Assembly: GCF_000143415.4 (NCBI RefSeq)
Contig: NW_003314363.1
Location: 310,001-374,000, forward strand
DNA: 64,000 nucleotides
Reading direction: 5' to 3'
Origin: Selaginella moellendorffii
Lineage: Eukaryota > Plantae > Lycopodiophyta
Below, one piece after another: positions 2,952 to 3,880 of the stretch. Below the pieces are notes generated by a model. It did not search any database. It saw only the letters and a list, made by a program, of their open reading frames with translations, and was not told the origin of the DNA. The number at the start of each line of letters is the position of its first letter. The first letter of the stretch is position 1. The position numbers were made by a program, and so were the translations under genes.

Positions 2952-3441
2952 ATGGCGACAAGCTTCCAGGACGCGCCAGTCATTGTCCGCAATGCCGCCA
3001 ATGGGCGCAAGATTTTCATGGCCAAATGCTCAGACTGTCACGCAGTGGAGAGCGATGGCGGCCACAAGCTTGGTAAGGCCCAGCTGATCGATCGATTTTT
3101 GTCCTTGTAGTTTCGGAATTTACTGTGGCCCTTGATCTCGATCGGTTCCAGGCCCCAATCTCCACGGCTTGTTTGGAAGGCAAGCAGGGACCGCGCCAGG
3201 CTACGCATTCTCGCCGGCGAACAAGAACACGAAAGTAATCTGGGACGAGAGAGCGCTTTTCGACTACATTTTTGATCCGAACAAGGTACCACAGCCATTT
3301 TCTCTTGACGATAGCGCAATACTGGTCTGTTTCTCCTCCACTCCATCACAGTTCTTTCCAGGAACGAAAAAGCCCTATGATGGCCTCGCTTCCCCGCAGG
3401 AGAGAGTCGACCTGATCGCGTTTTTGAAAAGAGCGTGCTGA
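2952..3441 (+). CDS. Divergent mitochondrial-type cytochrome c (3 exons: 2952-3072, 3152-3285, 3352-3441)
   Basis: Spliced translation [114 protein letters not shown]. It has the CxxCH heme motif, GPNLxGLFGR and PGTK. Both GT-AG introns keep the frame. Confidence 0.92.
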
Positions 3442-3880
3442 CCGGCCGTAAATTTTCTGACTGCCTGTAGCCAGTTGCTGGAAGTTCTGAGAAGGGCTTG
3501 GCAATTCTGGCGGAATTTTCTTGACGATCCTCGTGTCCAAACGGGACATACCTATTTTGAGAGCGCTTTATCTCTTGAGGAACTTCATCGGTTTGCTTTT
3601 CGATTTTACTACTTCTTTTGTAGACTTTTACGACCTTTCGCACACACTGGATAATCTTATCTATGGTTTCGATTCCATTTATAATTAAAATGAAACACGC
3701 AAACTACTATAAATGTCACCATGTATGATCAACATATAGCTGGCTGGAACGTTGAAAAATCATAAACTGAGCTAAATTTCAATATTTACGTGTATAGTAA
3801 TGTAGTCGACGTAGAAATTTTGCATTCTAGCCGCAATGTGGAGTCATGTACTAGCTGAGTCGTCAAGATAAGCGTAGGAC

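Follow-up and report, generated by a model that had tools for sequence, protein, structure and literature searches.

An old, expressed cytochrome c paralogue of Selaginella moellendorffii with lysine in place of Met80: a putative non-respiratory heme protein

Introduction

The three-exon gene SELMODRAFT_130669 of Selaginella moellendorffii, located at positions 2952-3441 (+) of the analysed window (scaffold GL377667.1:310001-374000, a stretch of 64,000 nt), encodes a protein with lysine in the column of the axial ligand Met80, and raises the question of what a mitochondrial cytochrome c altered in this way can still do. To our knowledge, Met80 is regarded as essentially invariant in mitochondrial cytochrome c, and hardly any Lys-ligated form is known apart from conformers induced by pH or made by engineering. 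These conformers have been studied for decades as a model for ligand switching and peroxidase activation. A gene of the kind described here would hard-wire the Lys-ligated state, kept by selection until synonymous sites saturate, and, if this is true, it would provide a natural system for asking what role a low-potential cytochrome c plays in the intermembrane space. The existing database label of the product (XP_002989918, 114 aa) is "cytochrome c", which probably overstates its function. An earlier note on this DNA had suggested that the gene is a paralogue repurposed outside respiration, with a young pseudogene as the alternative.

Gene structure and the ligand column

The spliced product of the exons within 2952-3441 is identical, in every letter, to the database protein P0012 (XP_002989918). 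Translation places the start codon, a plant-type N-terminal extension and the N-terminal helix in exon 1 (2952..3072, +), which retains G6, K8, I9 and F10, ends on base 1 of the split Gly29 codon and matches Pfam PF00034 on its own (E 2e-4). The same exon carries the heme-attachment motif CSDCH (3027..3041, +), assigned by translation and alignment to Cys14, Cys17 and His18 (horse numbering); all 78 canonical sequences agree in these three columns, and the Lys80 gene retains them. Intron 1 (3073..3151, +; 79 nt, GT..AG, phase 1) occupies a position common to the canonical Selaginella and Populus genes. Exon 2 (3152..3285, +) encodes residues 29-73 in horse numbering, and retains G29, P30, L32, G34, R38, G41, N52, W59, Y67, P71 and K73; its changes are Y48F (found also in the canonical Selaginella copy), Y65F, L68I, N70D and K72N. 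It is followed by intron 2 (3286..3351, +; 66 nt, GT..AG, phase 0) and by exon 3 (3352..3441, +), which encodes the remodelled ligand loop (3352-3393), the C-terminal helix and a terminal Cys, and closes with TGA at 3439-3441. The 3' untranslated region (3442..3700, +) is delimited by transcript contig ends at 3631-3700. The intact reading frame, splice sites and CxxCH motif listed in the earlier note are all present in this model.

Two features of the gene deserve separate mention. In this allele, intron 2 (3286-3351) is in frame and free of stops, so its retention would add 22 residues ahead of the ligand loop; in the other haplotype it is 11 nt longer, and the RefSeq isoforms recorded there differ by 8 inserted residues (X1) or by a changed C-terminus (X3). 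The last residue of the protein is Cys (3436-3438; horse position 102), found there in just 2 of 78 canonical green-lineage sequences. This terminal Cys resembles that of yeast iso-1 in placing a free thiol on the C-terminal helix.

The best solved-structure match of exons 2 and 3 is rice cytochrome c 1ccr (HMMER against the PDB). In the HMMER alignment the ligand-loop stretch faces PGTKMVFPGLKKPQER of the rice protein, and the codon AAG at 3370..3372 (+) falls in the Met80 column, as had been claimed. SELMODRAFT_130669 therefore lacks Met80 as sixth ligand; its only Met residues are Met1 and that at horse position 11, with none near the distal face. Alignment with 78 green-lineage cytochromes c also bears out F82Y, N70D and the loss of Lys72, Lys86 and Lys87 (K72N, K86A, K87S), and adds further conserved-column changes: V81P, Y74F, I75F, L68I and Y65F. 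The change P83D likewise adjoins Lys80. In the lysine ring that docks to complexes III and IV, taken as K8, K13, K27, K72, K73, K79, K86 and K87 together with Phe82, four members are thus altered (K72N, K86A, K87S, F82Y), and the docking lysines K8, K13, K27, K73 and K79 are retained; the pI of the protein is 9.1.

These residues bear on whether the protein is still a respiratory carrier between complexes III and IV, an isoform in the manner of yeast iso-2 or testis cytochrome c whose ligands are unusual. The predicted fold, the CxxCH motif, the five retained lysines and the basic pI are what such an isoform would have, but the lack of any Met beyond the two named and a docking face altered at K72, K86, K87 and F82 argue against it. 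Published potentials of Lys-ligated cytochrome c are about -137 to -145 mV (PMC12188557), around 400 mV under the working value near +250 mV and too low for electrons from cytochrome c1. Because of this potential and the changes at K72, K86, K87 and F82, a complex III-IV role is considered very unlikely.

Haplotypes and transcripts

A second copy of the gene (P0001) is located on GL377576.1, where its neighbours are, as at GL377667.1, a purple acid phosphatase, an alcohol dehydrogenase, a hydrolase and a SAUR gene. Because the neighbouring genes match, this copy is assigned to the other assembled haplotype. It has AAG at the Lys codon as well, and its coding sequence differs at five bases, of which three change an amino acid (R62G, D70Y, F97Y) and two are synonymous. 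The stretch 3350-3379 and more is covered by contigs of four public runs, each from a different study, and these contigs agree on every letter of the codon. The earlier note had asked for confirmation of this codon, and AAG is the only reading in the second haplotype and in the contigs of all four runs. A sequencing or assembly error at the Lys codon, for which no point speaks, is ruled out by the two independently assembled haplotypes and by contigs of four separate studies, and its probability is practically nil.

The RNA origin of the four runs is a guess, and the exact splice joints show that spliced transcripts are among their contigs. Both introns are absent from the contigs of the gene, cut exactly at the GT..AG borders. 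The joint of exons 1 and 2 (3071/3072 to 3151/3152) is present in contigs of three runs and that of exons 2 and 3, which skips 66 nt, in all four; a single 530-nt contig crosses both joints and reaches position 3697 in the 3' UTR. The contigs of the four runs include both alleles. Expression, another point to be checked, is thereby established in the sense that the gene is transcribed and correctly spliced, contigs giving the presence of a transcript and not its level.

The 5' side is less uniform. One contig of one run (X1) carries 31 loose 5' letters before position 2935, with no AG ahead of 2935. These letters match neither the window (at up to 3 mismatches) nor, by exact search, the fetched loci, which included the allele loci with 10 kb on each side of the gene; they could represent a distant 5' exon or a contig chimera. 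Upstream of the ATG the haplotypes stay alignable for about 120-130 bp and then lose homology (window about 2652-2835 versus L002:9701-9890). The 117 bp nearest to the ATG show 8% difference and three indels; both alleles are nonetheless found in transcript contigs.

Origin, age and selection

Profile search identified the canonical cytochrome c of Selaginella, SELMODRAFT_171122 (P0352, 111 aa), with PGTKMIFPGLKKPQ. Its gene lies on another scaffold, GL377631.1, and has introns at the same two positions and in the same phases as the Lys80 gene, which confirms the earlier view of SELMODRAFT_130669 as a paralogue standing beside a Met80 copy. The Lys80 gene has the land-plant CYTC structure, with a phase-1 intron in Gly29, a phase-0 intron after Lys73 and the N-terminal extension, and its intron positions match those of the canonical Selaginella gene and of the Populus genes. 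Since intron positions and phases are shared, the Lys80 copy arose by DNA-level duplication; a retroposed origin is ruled out by the same introns. P0352 is on record at two scaffolds with one sequence, which is taken to mean that the two haplotypes encode an identical canonical protein.

The canonical Selaginella gene (L003:3001-3468) is itself unusually diverged; its protein departs from the green consensus in 26 of 111 columns, among them Y48F, F36I and a Cys at position 43. The canonical protein and the Lys80 paralogue have Y48F and F97 in common, and this sharing of residues hints at a duplication within the Selaginella lineage.

Comparison of the Lys80 gene with the canonical gene, with exon blocks kept apart, gave differences at 130 of 330 bases (pS 0.77, pN 0.29, dN 0.37). 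The synonymous sites are fully saturated, and dating of the duplication by dS consequently fails. In the protein tree of green-lineage cytochromes c both Lys80 alleles fall inside the land-plant (embryophyte) clade with support of 85/94, a placement that does not fix the branch point within land plants. The branch of the Lys80 alleles measures 3.3 changes per column, whereas end branches have a median of 0.096.

The distribution of these changes is not random. The Lys80 protein is off the green consensus at 46 of 111 columns; it keeps 45 of 59 columns conserved at 97% or more, and only 20 of 52 variable ones (p=9e-5). The ligand loop and docking face (residues 65-87) hold 11/16 of the conserved-column changes (p=6e-4), namely Y65F, L68I, N70D, K72N, Y74F, I75F, M80K, V81P, F82Y, K86A and K87S. 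The proposed clustering of changes in the ligand loop is therefore confirmed, with the predicted fold and the heme-attachment core retained. When neutral drift was simulated from the canonical coding sequence to equal protein divergence, a stop-free frame survived in 4% of cases, with indels left uncounted.

The two haplotypes provide a second, more recent comparison. Their coding sequences differ at 5 of 345 positions (1.4%) without any indel, whereas the adjacent noncoding DNA, made up of the introns, 117 bp on the 5' side and as much of the 3' flank as can be aligned, differs at 27 of 418 positions (6.5%) with nine indel events (p=4e-4). The coding sequence is thus about 4.5-fold less divergent than the noncoding DNA next to it; nonsynonymous sites alone also differ from noncoding ones (p=8e-4), and about seven coding indels would be expected where none was found (P=6e-4). 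Judged by these substitution patterns, the data show that purifying selection has acted on most of the Lys80 protein, both over the long term and recently, and that its ligand loop and docking face are remodelled. They likewise show, by the same kind of evidence, a constraint weaker than that on the respiratory gene, the allelic differences being three nonsynonymous to two synonymous (3:2) and the canonical protein invariant.

A different reading is that of a transcribed duplicate without function, perhaps a second isoform which worked for a long time, lost Met80 recently and is now decaying. The 3:2 allelic ratio and the very long branch in the protein tree are in its favour, as are the young tandem Lys80 copies of Populus, with dN/dS of about 0.3 to 2.5, and the lack of orthologues in the searches carried out. 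Word-index searches of general collections (with exon 2-intron-exon 3 and with P0012) returned nothing above 60% identity except the two alleles of S. moellendorffii, and an exhaustive representative search gave mostly multi-domain bacterial cytochromes, with single-domain matches at most 57% identical; all of these collections were general ones. Decay is nevertheless difficult to reconcile with the low coding divergence and the missing indels between haplotypes, with changes that follow family conservation and group in one functional region, with a frame, start codon, four splice sites and CxxCH that are all intact, and with transcription and splicing of both alleles, and it is held to be unlikely. 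The young pseudogene suggested earlier is disfavoured in particular, because pS is saturated at a pN of 0.29, the open frame is improbable under drift and the coding sequence is conserved relative to noncoding DNA. The marks of a processed or decayed pseudogene were looked for and not found: the introns are kept and spliced, the frame is open, the substitutions are non-random and the coding sequence is conserved relative to its flanks.

Fold and heme attachment

The Lys80 protein scores 45.4 bits against PF00034 (cut-off 21.3). Its AlphaFold2 model, built from a 65-sequence alignment, has a pLDDT of 78 and a pTM of 0.73, and Foldseek matches this model to rice 1ccr with a TM of 0.80 (E 4e-13). 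According to the model, the protein keeps the cytochrome c fold. A look-up in the ESM Atlas gave generic cytochrome c clusters only.

The sequence contains the features of a substrate of HCCS (system III), namely an N-terminal helix with G6, K8, I9 and F10 ahead of the CxxCH motif, here CSDCH with its proximal His. No lycophyte retains maturation system I, and all of them use HCCS (PMC10879542); cytochrome c without a Met ligand is still hemylated by HCCS (PMC12767661). Given the retained helix residues, the use of HCCS in lycophytes and its tolerance of a missing Met, covalent attachment of heme to the Lys80 protein by HCCS is plausible.

Lys80 in other plants

About 360 relatives were fetched, and of these only the Selaginella alleles, a paralogue of Populus and two Asteraceae proteins have Lys at the Met80 column (P0307, P0366-P0371, P0343 and P0350 for Populus and Asteraceae). 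The Populus paralogue is present in P. trichocarpa, P. alba, P. tomentosa and P. euphratica, reads PGTKKDF and mostly carries N52H (loci L005:6001-7334, L007:6001-7329 and L008:6001-7117). The Asteraceae proteins read PGTKKFF in Cynara, and PGTKKAF with N52H in Deinandra. In three Populus species the Lys80 duplicate stands in tandem with the canonical gene, some 4.7 kb away from it. The two neighbours differ by a dS of 0.01-0.04, and their dN/dS of 0.3 to 2.5 derives from 1-3 synonymous differences only, counts too small to tell relaxed from positive selection; gene conversion between the tandem copies is likely.

Two further sequences were noticed during the survey. Lycium ferocissimum XP_059289610 (P0293, "cytochrome c-like") has Ile at the Met80 column (PGTKIVF) and is otherwise canonical. 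A fish "cytochrome c domain" protein, P0175 of Phoxinus phoxinus, has a very long tree branch (4.6) and is perhaps another divergent paralogue.

The trees indicate that Lys80 arose independently at least three times in plants (Selaginella, Populus, Asteraceae). With the nine single-base neighbours of ATG taken as equally likely, finding Lys in three of four losses of Met80 has p of about 0.005, a post hoc calculation. Lys may be favoured for keeping the heme six-coordinate, either in a new function or as the least harmful replacement. A wider proposal would treat the Lys80 cytochromes c of land plants as a natural class of His/Lys-ligated, low-potential, non-respiratory c-type heme proteins of mitochondria, with Selaginella as an ancient member under selection and the recurrence as a sign of ligand selection; it is offered tentatively, and we lean against it. 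A literature search, mostly outside subscription journals, found no paper on natural Met80Lys cytochromes c and none describing the Selaginella, Populus or Asteraceae copies. The independent copies in Populus and Asteraceae open the question to tests in transformable plants.

Proposed function

The reading preferred here, to which we give about an even chance, is that SELMODRAFT_130669 is an old, expressed and selected duplicate encoding a non-respiratory, HCCS-matured heme protein with His/Lys ligation and low potential, the chemistry being predicted from residue changes. The gene is an old duplicate, made at the DNA level, of the mitochondrial cytochrome c gene of land plants; it is still transcribed, spliced and under purifying selection, and its distal heme face has been rebuilt by replacement of Met80 with Lys, alteration of loop residues 68-83 and loss of the docking lysines K72, K86 and K87. 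Selaginella HCCS would recognise the N-terminal helix and the CxxCH motif, both intact in the apoprotein, and add heme to it covalently in the intermembrane space. The iron would then be held by His18 and a lysine amine, from Lys80 or possibly Lys79; the resulting heme would be low-spin, and its potential would lie several hundred mV under that of the canonical protein. Since laboratory Lys-ligated cytochromes c show this ligand pair, a potential near -140 mV and the absence of the 695-nm band are predicted. At such a potential the protein would not shuttle electrons from complex III to complex IV, and its role as a heme protein may instead lie in low-potential redox reactions, ligand binding or the handling of peroxide.

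Several points count against this proposal. Pro81, directly behind Lys80, may keep the amine off the iron, and dN/dS is near 1 in the Lys80 copies of Populus, which are comparable. The general collections searched gave no orthologue in a second species, although an old paralogue would be expected to have orthologues, and the constraint is weaker than on the canonical gene.

The main alternative with a functional gene leaves the lysine unbound, the heme being five-coordinate or ligated by water or hydroxide, and the protein mainly a peroxidase, or a binder or sensor of NO, CO or O2. The evidence of constraint and expression serves this reading equally well, the changes V81P, F82Y and P83D near Lys80 alter the loop backbone, and the diverged heme crevice of Pfcyt c-2 leaves its iron pentacoordinate at -278 mV (PMC12767661). 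Against this, loop lysines readily ligate ferric heme in laboratory variants with weakened Met (PMC12188557), and Lys has arisen at the column at least three times, compared with a chance share of about 1/9 of single-base ATG changes, which points to ligand choice. An unbound lysine is accordingly regarded as rather improbable, and His/Lys ligation remains the preferred reading.

Comparison with known systems

The closest known system is the canonical land-plant cytochrome c (SELMODRAFT_171122; rice 1CCR), with which the Lys80 protein shares the class I fold (predicted, TM 0.80), the CxxCH motif, the N-terminal extension, the length and the two intron positions and phases, at about 55-57% identity. 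In contrast to the canonical protein, it has Lys for Met80, a remodelled loop 68-83, no K72, K86 or K87, a roughly 30-fold longer branch, and Cys as final residue.

Laboratory Lys-ligated cytochromes c reportedly include the M100K variant of Paracoccus versutus c-550. The alkaline conformer and the Thr-to-Val variants of yeast iso-1 in the K79G background (PMC12188557) have the same pair of His and lysine amine as is expected here. These forms are engineered or pH-induced, most of them still with Met80, whereas in Selaginella the Met is absent in the genome, the surrounding loop is changed too, and Lys ligation is predicted from sequence.

Cytochrome c-2 of Plasmodium falciparum, with the apicomplexan c-2/c-1.5 clade, is likewise an old divergent paralogue beside a canonical copy (PMC12767661). 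The heme crevice has changed more than any other part of it, HCCS carries out its maturation, and chemically it is incompatible with the respiratory chain. However, Pfcyt c-2 retains an unused Met81 and has an insertion, and the Selaginella protein has neither such a Met nor a domain insertion; the origins are independent.

The "cytochrome c-like" paralogues of Populus (XP_011031557, POPTR_019G076101) and Asteraceae (Cynara XP_024963452, Deinandra KAK9077038) show the same exchange of Met for Lys in an intact frame. Unlike the Selaginella gene, they are young and retain K72, K86 and most of the loop, and they have separate origins.

Heme 2 of TsdA from Allochromatium vinosum is a natural His/Lys c-type heme whose lysine is supplied by a distal loop (PMC6879331). 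In contrast to the Selaginella protein, TsdA is a bacterial diheme enzyme in which the lysine adjoins a Met that takes over on reduction, and the two proteins are unrelated in family and fold.
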